Below are positions 55,801-61,800 of a DNA stretch of 64,000 nucleotides, one piece after another. The position numbers and the translations under genes are program-made. The stretch is from Haliotis rubra (lineage: Eukaryota), in assembly GCF_003918875.1 (NCBI RefSeq), contig NW_025765336.1, positions 620,001-684,000 of the forward strand. The letters are read 5' to 3'. How positions within the stretch are numbered: position 1 is the first letter of the stretch; each line of letters begins with the position of its first letter. Below the pieces are notes generated by a model. The model was not told where the DNA came from. It made no database searches and saw only the letters and a program-made list of their open reading frames with translations.

Positions 55801-58800
55801 TGTGTTGTCCCCCGCAATGATATTGCTGGGAAATTGCTAAAAGTGTTGTAAACCTCACTCACTCACTCATTCAAACCTATGCGATTGTGATGTAATGGTG
55901 TGCTGTGAGGTGGTTTGTTGTTGGATAGGGTGTGCGAGACTGAGGATGTGCGAGAGGAATGGTATGTTCAGGAGGGCAGCATCCATTGTTTCTATTCCTG
56001 TCTTGTTGTCAAAATCTCTTGATTGCAAATAGAAGTGGAATAAATAGAGAATCTCACCCGAGTTGATAAAGTTACTAGGCTTGCCGAGGATATCAATTAT
56101 ATCAACATGAGTTAGTTTTCAATGAAAAATGTACATCTCTCAACACTGTACAATTAGATTTGCAGTGCAGCGATGTCATAGCATTGTGATGTCATGAACT
56201 TGATGACGTCATAGCATTGTCAGGGCATTGTACAAAATCTACTGTCAAAACGATATCCCCTAGGAGATATCATATGATCTCACACATGCGATATCTCCTG
56301 TGGAACACAGTTTTGGATGATAAATGTATAACTATCATTAACCTGTGTGGGATAATATCATTAACCTGTGTGGGATAATATCATTAACCTGTGTGGGATA
56401 ATATCATTAACCTGTGTGGGATAATATTCTTCAACTGGGTTATTCCAGCTCATGCGCGTCTGATGTTCCGAGATGAGGTGTTGGTTCAGGATGCTGTAGT
56501 TGCCGTCACAGTGATGGAGTCTTCTATGCAGGTATGTAGGTGGGAGGCTGACAGACATGGGTAGCAGGCTGGTGGATAGAGATTTTGATTTTTGATTACC
56601 TGCCATATTATTGAAGCAGTATAGTGCATGTCTTTCATAAAGTTGACAAATGTATGCTGCAAGACCTTAATTTGCGAAGGCCCTTTGGACACAGAAATCA
56701 GAGATCTCACAGCCATAATGTTGGTTGACCGTCCCAGCCAGGCAATCAGTAAACTGCTGCCTCCATGGAACTGGAAATTTTAACTAATCCTGCACTACTT
56801 ACTTCCTGCACTTATTGCTTACGACTCGAAACGTGGCTGTGCCAGACGATTGATGTTGAAAGTGTAGACTGTGATCACTTCCTGGTCTCGGGTAAACATC
56901 CGTCTGCGCACGCATCACCGGAAGGTGACGTCAGCCACCTCAGATTATTGCTTTTCGCATGCCTCGCAAGACGTGTGGTTTGCCAGCTCGACTGATTTGT
57001 ATCCTATGAATTGTGTTTATTGATAATAAACTGACTTTTGGGTGTTTTCCTTTGTTTTTCAGAGGGTGTAGGTATTACCCTTCTGTTTCTTTGTTGTAGT
57101 ACTGTTGTAGTGATGGTGTTTGTGTTAAACACGATAGTTTTCATCACTATTATCGGTCCTTAAGCCATTCAGAACATGTGAAGCCCGATGTATTCAGTAG
57201 TGGCTTGTTCTTGGCTCATGCTTATTTGTTATACTATTATAGCCTAATGGTTATATTAAGCCTTAATTCTGGTCTCCAATCTTGTCAGTATTTGTGAGGC
57301 GTTTGTTCTCAATTATGTTGCTGAATTTCCCGTGTGTTCCTCATTACTATTGTAATGTTTTCACCGTGGTTTGCTGGGGTTTCTGCTATGTTGCAGTTTC
57401 TATCAGTATTTGTGAGGCGTTTGCTGTATAGTTTGTAAAGGCGGGGTATCTCATAAGTGCCTTCATTCATGCTGTTTGAATTGCACTTTTCCCTGTTTTT
57501 CCCTGTTTTTCACATGAATGAATGTGCTTGTTGCGCTTTCTTAATATATCATCTTGACACCTTTTTTCTGTCTATGAAGCGCCAGGTCCAACACCGATGT
57601 CGCCTATGGCAAGCACCCAGATTCTTGCCACACCACTGATGTCCACTAACTCTAGGGCGTCTGCCGCTCCGTCTCCATTCTCCAGGTTGCTGTTTTCAGA
57701 GAATGGCAGGCGTCATACTCCTGACGCCTAAGATCCATGCGCCGCACGCTCAGCAGTCACTGGATGTTTCGACATCCATTCCACACTTGACCTAGTTAGC
57801 AGGGACTGCAGCGCCTGTACGGCGCATCTACCAAATCGACTATGACCTCTGCGTTCAGCAGTTGGTGTCAGCGTCTCCATCGCCATACCTACCTGTTCCA
57901 GCTTCGTTCCTGACTACAGCAAATGTATGGTCTACCTGATCCAGCGCCTGTACGGTGCCTGTAAACCATACTTACTCACTCCAGAGCCTGTATGGCGTTT
58001 CCACCAGATCCAGCGCTTGTATGGCGCCTATAACACCATACTCACTTGCTCACTCCTATAAAACGGCGCCTACTCACTCCAGCGCCTGTCCTGTCAATTA
58101 GATCTAGCGCCTGTACGGCACCACCAGCTGTATGGCGCCTCTACTAGATCTAGCGCTTGTACAGCGCTACCAGCTGTATGGCGCATCTACTAAATCTAGC
58201 GCCTGTACGGCGTTACCAGCTGTATGGCGCCTCTACTAGATCTAGCGCTTGTACGGCGCTACCAGCTGTATGGAGCCTCTACTAGATCTAGCCTGTAACG
58301 GCACCACCAGCTGTAGCTGTACTGGCCTCTACTAGATCTAGCTGTTGCACGGCGCTACCAGCTGTGCTGTATGGCCTCTACTAGATCTAGCCCTGTAACG
58401 GCCCTACCAGCCGGCTGTACGGCCTCTACTAGATCTAGATCTAGCTTGTACGGCGCTACCAGCTGTATGGCCTCTACTAGATCTAGTGCCTCTACGGCAC
58501 CACCAGCTGTATGGTGCCTCTACTAGATCTAGCGCCTGTACGGCACCACCAGCTGTATGGCGCCTCTACTAGATGTAGCGCCTGTACGGCGCAACCAGCT
58601 GTATGGTGCCTCTACTAGATCTGGCGCCTGCACGGCTACCACCAGCTGTACGGCACCTCTACTAGATCTAGCCTGTACGGCACCACCAGCTGTATGGCGC
58701 CTCTACTAGATGTATCTGCGTATGGCGCCTAGCCAGCGGTATACTCATCTAGGCTGTACGGGCTACTACTACCACTAAGCCTGTATGGCTGCCACCAACT

Positions 58801-61800
58801 GTATGGGCCTCTACTAGATCTGGCATATCGCACCACCAGCTGTATGGCTCAATTAGATCTAGCGGCTTGCCGGGCACCAGCTGTACCTCTAGCTATAGAT
58901 ATGGCCTCTACTATCGCCTATACGGGCGACCAGCTGTATGGCCTCTACTAGATCTGGCGCCACGGCACCACCAGCTGTATGGTGCCTCTACTAGATCTAA
59001 GCGCCTGCACGGCACCACCAGCTGTATGGGCCTCTCTAGATCTAGCTATTGTACGGCGATCTATTTCAGCGCTAATGCGGCGCCCGACCAGCTGTATGGC
59101 AGCCTCTACTAGATCTAGCTAATAGATCATGCGGCGCTACCAGCTGTACGGGCACCTCTACTAGATCTGGCCTGTAATGTATGGGCTACCAGCTGTATGG
59201 TGCCTCTACTAGATCTAGCGCTTGTAACATGCGGTACCAGCTGTATGGTGCGCTTCTACTAGATCTGGCGGCAATGTACGGCACCACCAGCTGTATTAGC
59301 CTCTACTAGATCTGGCGCTTTGTACGGGCGCTACCAGCTGTATGGGCCTCTACTAGATCTAGCGCTTATACGGCGCTACCAGCTGTATGGTGCCTCTACT
59401 AGATCTGGCCTGTACGGGCGCTACCAGCTGTACGCTTTACTAGATCTAGCGTCTGTACGGCGCTACCAGCTGTATGGCGCCTCTACTAGATCTAGCGCCT
59501 ATAAACCAATACTCACTCCAGCAGGAAGACACTGCGATGGAACAGTGTTGGACTCTGAATACTGTGTTCCAGCAGCGTTTTTGCCAGATTCAGCACCTAT
59601 ATGACGCCTCCACTATATCCAGTGACCCAACACTGCCGCTGTTACAGGTCATTGGCTCCCTCCCTCTGCAAGCAGTTTGCGTTCTGCTGTTTATTTTGTT
59701 GACAGTTACATAGACAGATCCTCGAATACCAATGCACAAAATCGGTGATTTACAATGTGATTAGGTTGTCTGACAAAACATCCACTTGCACAGTTTGAGA
59801 TCGATTGGGTCATTGGATGAAGAGATATTTACAAACAACCGGGTCCACATGCATTTCATGCCAAACTTTAGGGCGAAATGATCGACGGTTCTCTATTTCG
59901 CCAATATCGTCTGTTGTCAGCGTGAAGACGTTCCTGTGTTCCTCTTGTGTTCAGCTGGTGTACTCAGTTTGTACATTAAGCGAACTCAAGCCATCAGAGG
60001 CATGTAAGCAAAACCCCGAGTGTTTTGTGGATACGGACTTCCTTTATTCATGCGTATAATGCGGCTGATCTGGTTTCCCCTACATCTGCGCCAACCTCCA
60101 GTACTTCGCTACAATCGCCTCTACGATGGCGCTTCACTGTCCCTGTACAGTAGCGCTTCACTGTACCTGTACAGTGGCATTGATAATGCAAGGAGTGTTT
60201 CTAGAAGTCGGACACAGTCTTCGCCAATCAATATCCACACCATATGTGTCCAACGCTTCAGACCATGGTGCCAGACCAGCACCTCAACAATCCCCGAAGG
60301 ATATCACATCCTACATTGTTGTTCGCAATGAAGCACGGCGATGTCGTGTGGGGAATGAGTTGTTTTGAGCAAAACAACTGGGTATGTTAGTTAAAGGACT
60401 AACACTTGGATAAACTCAGGGCCATGCTTCTTACTGCATTCCCTAAACCTAATAACGCTTTAAAAATCGTGTGACCTTTTCCATTTAAGCGTACATGGCT
60501 TATATGCGAATTACCACTGAGATGTAATCCCTCTCTGTCGACCAGTCTTCCAGATTCCACGAAGGTGTCTTCATTCATGATATTTCTTCCCACGAGGCAT
60601 GATGTCGCCTTGTGGGAGAAGAGGTGTTCCGAGGGAAACAACTGGGTGTGTCAGTTAAGGAGCAACTCTTCGAAAAACTCAAGTCAATGCTTTTTACTGC
60701 ATTTCCCCAAAGCTAATCTCGCTTTAAAAACTGCATGGTCTTTTCCATTTAAGCCTACATGTCTTATATGTGAATTACCACTGAGAGATAGTCACTGTCT
60801 GTTGACTATTCTGCCAGGTGCTACGAAGATACCTTCCACCATGCTTTTTCTTCCCATGAAGCACGCCGACGACGTATGGGAAAAGAGTTGTTCCAGGAGA
60901 ACAACTGGGCGTGTCAGTTAAGGAGTAACGCTTGGGTTAACCTGAGTCACTGCTTTTTACTACATTTCCCTAAAGCTAATAACACTTTAAAAGTCTTCTG
61001 GTATATTCCATTTAAGACTACGTGTCTTATATGCGTAATACTACTGCCTGATCTAGGTGCGACGGCGGTTTTCCACCACCATGGCGAACTTGACCGAGAT
61101 GTCTTTGTTTACCTTGCGAGGCAATCCCCACAGATGACACACCCTCCATCCTGCCTGTCCGATAAATGTGCAGGAAGTAAGTAGTGCAGGATTAGTTAAA
61201 AATTTAGTAAAATCTAAATATTTTATATATTTGTATACTTATCCTGCACTTCTTATGATAAGGGCCCACCCTGCGCTTTCACTTACTTCCCTGCTTTGTT
61301 TTCATCTGTGGGATTTACGGCAATAATCTGAGGTGGCTGACGTCACCACTGACGGATGTTTACCCGAGACCAGGAAGTGATCACAGTCTATGCTTTCAAC
61401 ATCAATCGTCTGGCACAGCCACGTTTCGAGTCATAAGCAATAAGTGCAGGAAGTAAGTAGTGCAGGATAAGTATACAAATATAAAAAGTATTTAGATTTT
61501 ACTAATATTGCTGAGTATGGCGTTAAACAACAAACAAATAGTAAACTGATTGATTATCATTTTTGAATATGCTTTTATGTGCATCTTTGGGTGCAGTTCA
61601 ATAGCAGAATTGTCTGTTTAGGCAGTTTTACCTCACCCGTAAGAAGTCCCAAACAAACATATCCCCTCACCTGTAAGACTGTCCTAAACAGTGTCTATCT
61701 CCCCTGTTTCCAGGGGGCAGCACTGCTGGGTGGTGTGAACGCCCTACATACAGCCTTCCCAGAGGATGCAGAAGATGAATACAGGCTTCAAGGTAGAGTT

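Follow-up and report, generated by a model that had tools for sequence, protein, structure and literature searches.

We analysed a 64,000-nucleotide stretch of the genome of the mollusc Haliotis rubra (NCBI RefSeq assembly GCF_003918875.1, contig NW_025765336.1, positions 620,001 to 684,000 of the forward strand; hereafter the window, whose own coordinates are used below), and in it a repetitive element at 56775-61505. The upstream exon (56451-56531) matches residues 579-605 of human MCM9 (PDB 7wi7_B, E 4.7e-6), so that the element lies in an intron of MCM9, as the original prediction had proposed from the sequence alone, and in sense orientation; Pfam searches with two short MCM9 exons gave no match. 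The element very probably belongs to a non-autonomous DIRS1-like (tyrosine-recombinase) family of retrotransposons, as a copy that is old and apparently fixed; the family has reached hundreds of insertions by way of the proteins of other elements.

Layout of the element

The element and its target site comprise the following features (ITR, inverted terminal repeat; ICR, internal complementary region; SINE, short interspersed element; TRF, Tandem Repeats Finder):

56775..56788, + strand: left terminal extension (the 'divergent ITR' part), AAATTTTAACTAAT, complementary to ICR positions 61191-61204; boundary ambiguous by 1-2 A
56783..56951, + strand: left ITR, 169 nt (inverted-repeat search; aligned with nine other copies)
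57487..59498, + strand: non-coding interior, including a minisatellite (58099-59498)
59623..59873, + strand: foreign 250-bp repeat fragment, occupying the place of ~2.6 kb that in longer family copies contains RNase H-region and recombinase remnants
59983..60234, + strand: remnant of a tyrosine-recombinase C-terminus (tblastn, aa 314-388, 32% identity, E 2.5e-4)
60328..61046, + strand: tandem array of 2.7 units of 264 bp, between the recombinase remnant and the ICR (TRF)
61168..61255, + strand: ICR (stored circle junction), made up of a left ICR (61168-61204) and a right ICR (61204-61255)
61320..61472, + strand: right ITR, 153 nt, with a 16-17-nt deletion relative to the left ITR
61473..61505, + strand: right extension, ending in ...GATTTTACTAA, complementary to the right ICR
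61506..61541, + strand: target, the SINE tail motif TATTGCTGAGT.GGCGTTAAACAACAAAC; insertion between ...CTGGAA and TATTGC..., without duplication

The ITR arms pair in two blocks (56783-56904 with 61351-61472, 122 nt, 97% complementary; 56924-56951 with 61320-61347, 28 nt, 100% complementary) that are parted by the deletion in the right arm, and their alignment contains three to five substitutions depending on the placement of the indel edges, in agreement with the near-identical ITRs with one ~16-bp indel described originally. The ITRs are conserved throughout the copies aligned, and the ITR tip sequence of the family reads CCTGCACTACTT.... The left ICR is 97% complementary to the left end over 37 nt (56775-56811), and the right ICR is 94% complementary to the right end over 52 nt (61454-61505). 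Read as its reverse complement, the ICR runs from right ITR tip through right extension and left extension to left ITR tip, and so is indeed the stored right-end/left-end junction that had been suspected, with its extent now set at 61168-61255. The left end of the family, (A/T)ATTTTTAACTAAT followed by CCTGCAC, was also found in 29 other copies with unrelated flanks, and the right end ...GATTTTACTAA in 13 other copies. Together with the lack of a target-site duplication (TSD) and the recombinase remnant, the ITRs, the ICR and the right extension identify the element as DIRS1-like, as originally described; its description as non-autonomous is upheld too.

The coding sequence is dead, as had also been claimed: the longest open reading frame (ORF) within 56775-61505 encodes 118 aa. 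The three proteins of an intact DIRS1-like element nested in another family copy (L034, described below) served as tblastn queries. They left no trace of reverse transcriptase (RT) or RNase H in the window copy, where the sole protein trace was the C-terminal remnant matched by the recombinase of this nested autonomous element; a premature TAG stop lies inside it (60202-60204). The minisatellite consists of ~30 units of 46-47 bp (TRF). In the 264-bp array, a short hairpin opens every unit and a second hairpin follows (60355-60410, 60620-60670 and 60885-60935), with arms GTTGTTTTG/CAAAACAAC in unit 1 and GTTGTTC/GAACAAC in unit 3. Comparison of the 264-bp unit with the 3' untranslated region of the nested element revealed no similarity. 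A perfect TGACGTCA palindrome, resembling a cAMP response element and kept in most family copies, stands at the inner end of both ITRs (56926-56933 and 61338-61345) and is a possible promoter element.

Shared stop codons and propagation in trans

With the first 226 nt of the element as the query, at least 41 scored matches (89-98% identity) were obtained from at least 281 candidate left ends in the 1.38-Gb assembly, the genome search scoring the best candidates only; 20 copies with 8 kb of downstream sequence were examined end to end. Recurrence of the same architecture in at least 41 scored copies shows that it is not due to chance. The shortest of the 20 copies measures 0.5 kb and the longest 6.4 kb. 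Most common is a form of 5.3-6.4 kb that comprises the left ITR, ~1.1 kb of non-coding sequence, tandem repeats, a further ~2.6 kb, three or four 264-bp units, the ICR and the right ITR, and the minisatellite array varies in length among copies (L035, ~5.9 kb). The copies compared fall into two subfamilies, A1 (L033, L036, L040, L044, L045, L046, L048 and L050) and A2 (the window copy, L031, L034-outer, L037, L038, L039, L043, L047 and L049).

Coding remnants in the long copies were likewise decayed. Matches covered aa 85-388 of the recombinase at ~35% identity (E down to 7e-32) and, in the pol ORF, the RNase H region (aa ~396-574), but neither the RT domain (aa 121-284) nor the gag-like ORF gave a tblastn match in any of the 20 copies. 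Stop-free pieces upstream of the RNase H remnant in L036 had no Pfam match even at E = 1, and Pfam searches with the ORFs and stop-free pieces of the family found only the RT, RNase H and integrase of the nested element. Genome-wide, the recombinase region gave 119 scored matches, none of them intact and with a longest open frame of 328 aa, as against open frames of 418-1063 aa in unrelated DIRS lineages at 31-40% identity. Of the RT/RNase H gene, which belongs to the definition of the DIRS1-like group, the long copies examined thus retain an RNase H-region remnant; no copy has the coding capacity of a DIRS element, although descent from DIRS elements is clear. A recurrent ORF of 110-144 aa near the left end of about nine copies was not taken for a gene, being a T-rich frame rich in Phe, Leu and Cys.

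The stop codons, read in the frame aligned to the intact recombinase, are in large part shared. At the position of Arg179, TGA was read in 12 of the 13 copies retaining the site and TGT in the other one. At that of Trp378, all 15 copies in which the site survives, from both subfamilies and including the window copy, have TAG. Two further stops occur in every A1 copy that keeps the site (eight and seven copies respectively) and in no A2 copy. Comparison of flanks places the stop-sharing copies at unrelated loci. Since the stops are common to both subfamilies, the common ancestor was already recombinase-dead, and since no RT domain is detectable either, later copies must have been made with borrowed proteins. 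This pattern shows that the family multiplied after the death of its recombinase gene, by mobilisation in trans.

What the family has kept is its cis-acting parts, namely the ITRs, the terminal extensions and the ICR. In a 10-copy alignment, mean pairwise identity was 96% over the first 200 nt and 94-97% over the ICR, right ITR and extension, compared with 88-91% in the 3' non-coding region and 80-85% in the middle; the 264-bp array region (88-91%) is kept in most copies. The difference between termini (94-97%) and interior (80-90%) suggests selection or constraint on the ends, the more so as the ITRs are CpG-rich and, if anything, would be expected to decay faster. Conserved termini and ICR beside a freely drifting interior indicate which sequences matter. 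Variants diagnostic of a subfamily are found in the left and the right ITR of a given copy alike, as predicted if one ITR is rebuilt from the other.

Following the Cappello/Poulter-Goodwin model (PMC3266345) and the Dictyostelium experiments (PMC7192593) for transcription, reverse transcription, end completion and integration, we propose that transcription would start in the left ITR and end in the right ITR, that the transcript would be reverse-transcribed by the RT of a helper, that its missing ends would be rebuilt by annealing to the ICR, and that the joined junction would then recombine with an A/T-rich target through a helper recombinase. After entering a SINE tail in the MCM9 intron, the window copy would have lost ~2.6 kb, gained the unrelated 250-bp filler and undergone a change in the length of its minisatellite.

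Three irregular structures were seen besides the regular copies. L032 (G000:C2770:167498-175998, 501-999) is a 0.5-kb mini-copy that lacks an ICR and consists of 380 nt of the left end fused to the final 113 nt, probably by deletion in place. In L037 (G000:C2345:2770702-2779202, 499-4553), the left end and 25 nt of left flank recur in inverted orientation as the 'right end', through either palindromic rearrangement or faulty assembly. A joint between the left and right ITR tips (56817 to 61425), giving a short ITR-tip palindrome, was seen at single-copy depth in X1 and in X4, in one contig of each, and probably represents a tiny derivative elsewhere in the genome.

Age of the window copy and its target site

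The original prediction had read near-identical termini around a ruined interior as the result of recent mobilisation in trans. Propagation of the family in trans stands, given the shared stops and the missing RT and gag, but recency of the window derivative does not: that this deleted form was mobilised recently, and is perhaps still active or polymorphic, appears improbable. Its ITRs and ICR remain recognisable and ~97% matched, and many intact DIRS elements in the genome could act as helpers, yet the ITRs of different copies are about as alike. ITR-ITR identity is ~97% in the window copy, 94.7-96.9% within other copies and ~96% between the ITRs of different copies, so that likeness of the two termini is no sign of recent movement. 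The pairing of ICR and termini has four mismatches in 89 nt, even though the model has the ends rebuilt from the ICR in each round; overall, the ITRs and this pairing have decayed by ~3-4.5%. Among the 30 left ends most like that of the window, independent pairs reached at most 97.8% identity (mean 93.9%), and near-identical sister copies were not found. One left-end pair at 99.6% was rejected as sister copies because it shares its flank and reflects a segmental duplication.

The internal structure leads to the same view. The 250-bp fragment sits exactly where A2 relatives (L038, L049 and L034-outer) have ~2.6 kb, and 40-mer pattern searches allowing up to three mismatches in 40 nt revealed no second occurrence of either filler junction in the genome. 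The special internal structure of the window copy was therefore never re-copied. Other copies with the same deletion had been expected originally, and their absence had been named as the outcome that would speak against the claim; for this structure, none exists. The 250-bp repeat itself had 1417 candidates, 95-97% identical, none of them linked to the DIRS family. It is very abundant, measures ~250 bp or more and often occurs in inverted pairs 0.4-2.2 kb apart on one contig, which makes it a probable terminal repeat of some other element. Further copies extend leftwards (...CATTGACGAACGTTGACCTTTA), the one at 59623-59873 being shortened. Contig depth for this repeat was very high in both organism A and organism B, whereas organism C had almost none.

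The insertion was also recovered from other sequence data. In an independent run of organism A, a 414-nt Logan contig bridges the left junction (56398-56809) with four differences. In organism B, a Logan contig covering 56402-56791 runs 17 nt into the element, with a flank that carries 18 differences in 390 nt and six gaps (~4.6% diverged); as an empty site would run on into the SINE tail, the insertion appears to be present in organism B as well. Organism C was too diverged for this comparison. Among the joints listed, none skipped 56775-61505, a weak negative as contigs break in the repeated SINE tail. Of the marks of a recent or polymorphic insertion, neither near-identical sisters nor intact pairing between ICR and termini was seen, and no empty-site allele appeared among those joints. 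The window copy is thus old and apparently fixed, and a recent jump is not supported.

It is very unlikely that the window copy arrived as a complete autonomous DIRS element and then decayed in place, with no mobilisation in trans. Its large deletion and filler are private to the locus, as such a history would have it, but its TAG stop is common to all 14 other copies that keep the site and both RT domain and gag are missing from every relative sampled, so the ancestor of the family was already defective. The last alternative, also raised originally, by which the inverted repeats are those of a DDE-type DNA transposon, a miniature inverted-repeat transposable element or a foldback element and the 'ICR' is incidental, would fit long terminal inverted repeats taken alone but can be dismissed, given the absence of a TSD in 14 copies, an ICR that in each copy is complementary to the left and the right end, the like arrangement in an autonomous DIRS element whose ITRs are unrelated and whose ICR sequence co-varies with them, and the recombinase and RNase H-region remnants inside.

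Integration of the family was without TSD in all 14 copies with both flanks. Of 29 copies, 23 have A as the base preceding the element and none has G or C there, and the four bases past it were T (10/14), W (14/14), T (13/14) and T (12/14), where W is A or T. The resulting preference, WA/TWTT with the slash at the insertion point, is similar to the junction AA/ATTT stored in the ICR. The start ATT and the junction AAT are those tabulated for most DIRS1-like elements of Aplysia and Lottia (PMC3266345). Targeting of SINE tails was considered and rejected: the window copy does sit in one, but the 13 other copies whose right flank could be read all lie elsewhere, and the preference is for the short motif.

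Other copies of the target SINE read ...GCTGGAATATTGC..., SINE copies elsewhere in the window have a tail reading ...GGAATATTGC..., and contig loose ends read ...CATATAGCTGG before 61504. The SINE family or families concerned have a common tail, ...ATAGCTGGAATATTGC.G.G....GGCGTTAAACAACAAAC, seen at 61506-61541 and, on the minus strand, at 10161-10186 and 30315-30340; the DIRS copy split one such tail.

Possible helpers and relation to known DIRS elements

In L034 (1-8501), extended with L051 (G000:C2671:63000-79954), a family copy is interrupted by an intact 4.3-kb DIRS1-like element (864-5206 in the oriented copy) with its own 97-nt ITRs and its own ICR, inserted without target duplication and represented by ~3-5 genome copies at ≥90% protein identity. 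It contains three ORFs:

496 aa: gag-like, no Pfam hit
598 aa: RVT_1 and RT_RNaseH
418 aa: recombinase, Phage_integrase (PF00589)

This element shares with the window family not only the genome but the layout of ITRs, ICR and extension. The two ICR cores are identical at 48 of 58 positions (score 72, against 27 +/- 4.7 for shuffles), and right extension and junction are clearly homologous, which makes the nested element a candidate for cross-mobilisation. A first look for DIRS-type tyrosine recombinases gave more than 11,000 candidates, many with open frames of 400-1200 aa and 51-70% mutual identity. These point to an unusually rich and diverse DIRS complement in the genome and, with so many uninterrupted frames, to plentiful possible helpers. 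The family's own parent lineage seems extinct in the assembly.

Some observations count against the reading set out here. Outside the junction, the ITRs of the nested element cannot be aligned with those of the family, and its recombinase is only ~35% identical to the family remnant. The original prediction had called for a search for further copies and for autonomous partners; further copies are there, but the copies and recombinase matches examined included no intact element with ITRs of this family, and a rare intact master could have been missed with 20 copies read end to end and only the best candidates scored. As for the age of the window copy, the evidence from organism B is 17 nt of the element in one contig, and it cannot be proved whether the deletion came before or after insertion, the data showing only that it was never re-copied.

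A more specific version of trans-mobilisation, which we put forward tentatively, is that the family was cross-mobilised by autonomous DIRS lineages distant from its own extinct parent, with recognition through the ~58-nt junction module (ICR core and extensions) and perhaps through the hairpin-bearing 264-bp array. Were this so, the conserved parts would mark out the minimum needed in cis for reverse transcription of a DIRS element and its integration by a recombinase, a minimum that the helper/donor assay in Dictyostelium could not establish.

Of the retrotransposon orders, DIRS is the least understood, and evidence for its proteins acting in trans is thin. Hundreds of copies with two ancestral recombinase stops and no detectable RT domain provide comparative evidence, from an animal genome, for reverse transcription and integration supplied in trans, the family-level evidence for integration being the most useful part; the single copy in the MCM9 intron is in itself ordinary. 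For annotation, protein-based profile screens for RT, methyltransferase (MT) and tyrosine recombinase (YR) would probably miss or under-count a sizeable non-coding DIRS family of this kind.

The family is a new example of an already described type, as both non-autonomous DIRS elements and DIRS1-like elements of molluscs are known. The latter have been described since 2011, among them AcaDIRS1/2 of Aplysia and LgDIRS1-3 of Lottia, together with their layout and TSD-less integration (Piednoel et al. 2011, PMC3266345). The window family shares with them the order left ITR, left ICR, right ICR, right ITR and right extension, the absence of a TSD and the position of the recombinase gene upstream of the ICR. 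It differs in having neither intact ORFs nor a detectable RT domain or gag, in its long conserved ITR (~163 nt), in its shorter right extension (~24-33 nt versus 46-49) and in the minisatellite and 264-bp array that fill much of its interior.

TOC1 of Chlamydomonas reinhardtii is a non-autonomous DIRS retrotransposon with an autonomous relative, TOC3 (PMC9940879). Like the window family, it belongs to the DIRS order, lacks enzymes of its own and exists in multiple copies, so that its proteins are supplied in trans. It differs in its green-alga host and in its reported activity in laboratory strains, as the window family gives no sign of current activity.

The closest experimental parallel to a helper-dependent copy is a truncated DIRS-1 construct of Dictyostelium, which is still reverse-transcribed by the endogenous RT (Malicki et al. 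2020, PMC7192593). In the same system, replication proceeds through a single-stranded cDNA that is completed on the ICR, and the ICR is required to complete retrotransposition; trans action was shown directly for RT only, that of the other proteins being deduced from cDNA transformation (PMC7192593). Like the window family, the construct lacks the coding capacity for gag, RT and RNase H and retains the ends and the ICR. It was engineered, however, and full trans-complemented integration could not be scored, whereas here integration in trans is read from stops shared among natural copies.

Three further repeats flank the locus in the window. A 23-bp tandem repeat of five units (56310-56447) lies directly upstream of the MCM9 exon, 56150-56345 falls within a repeat of very high depth, and a 36-bp CACTCA-rich minisatellite (62155-62496) occupies part of the next intron.

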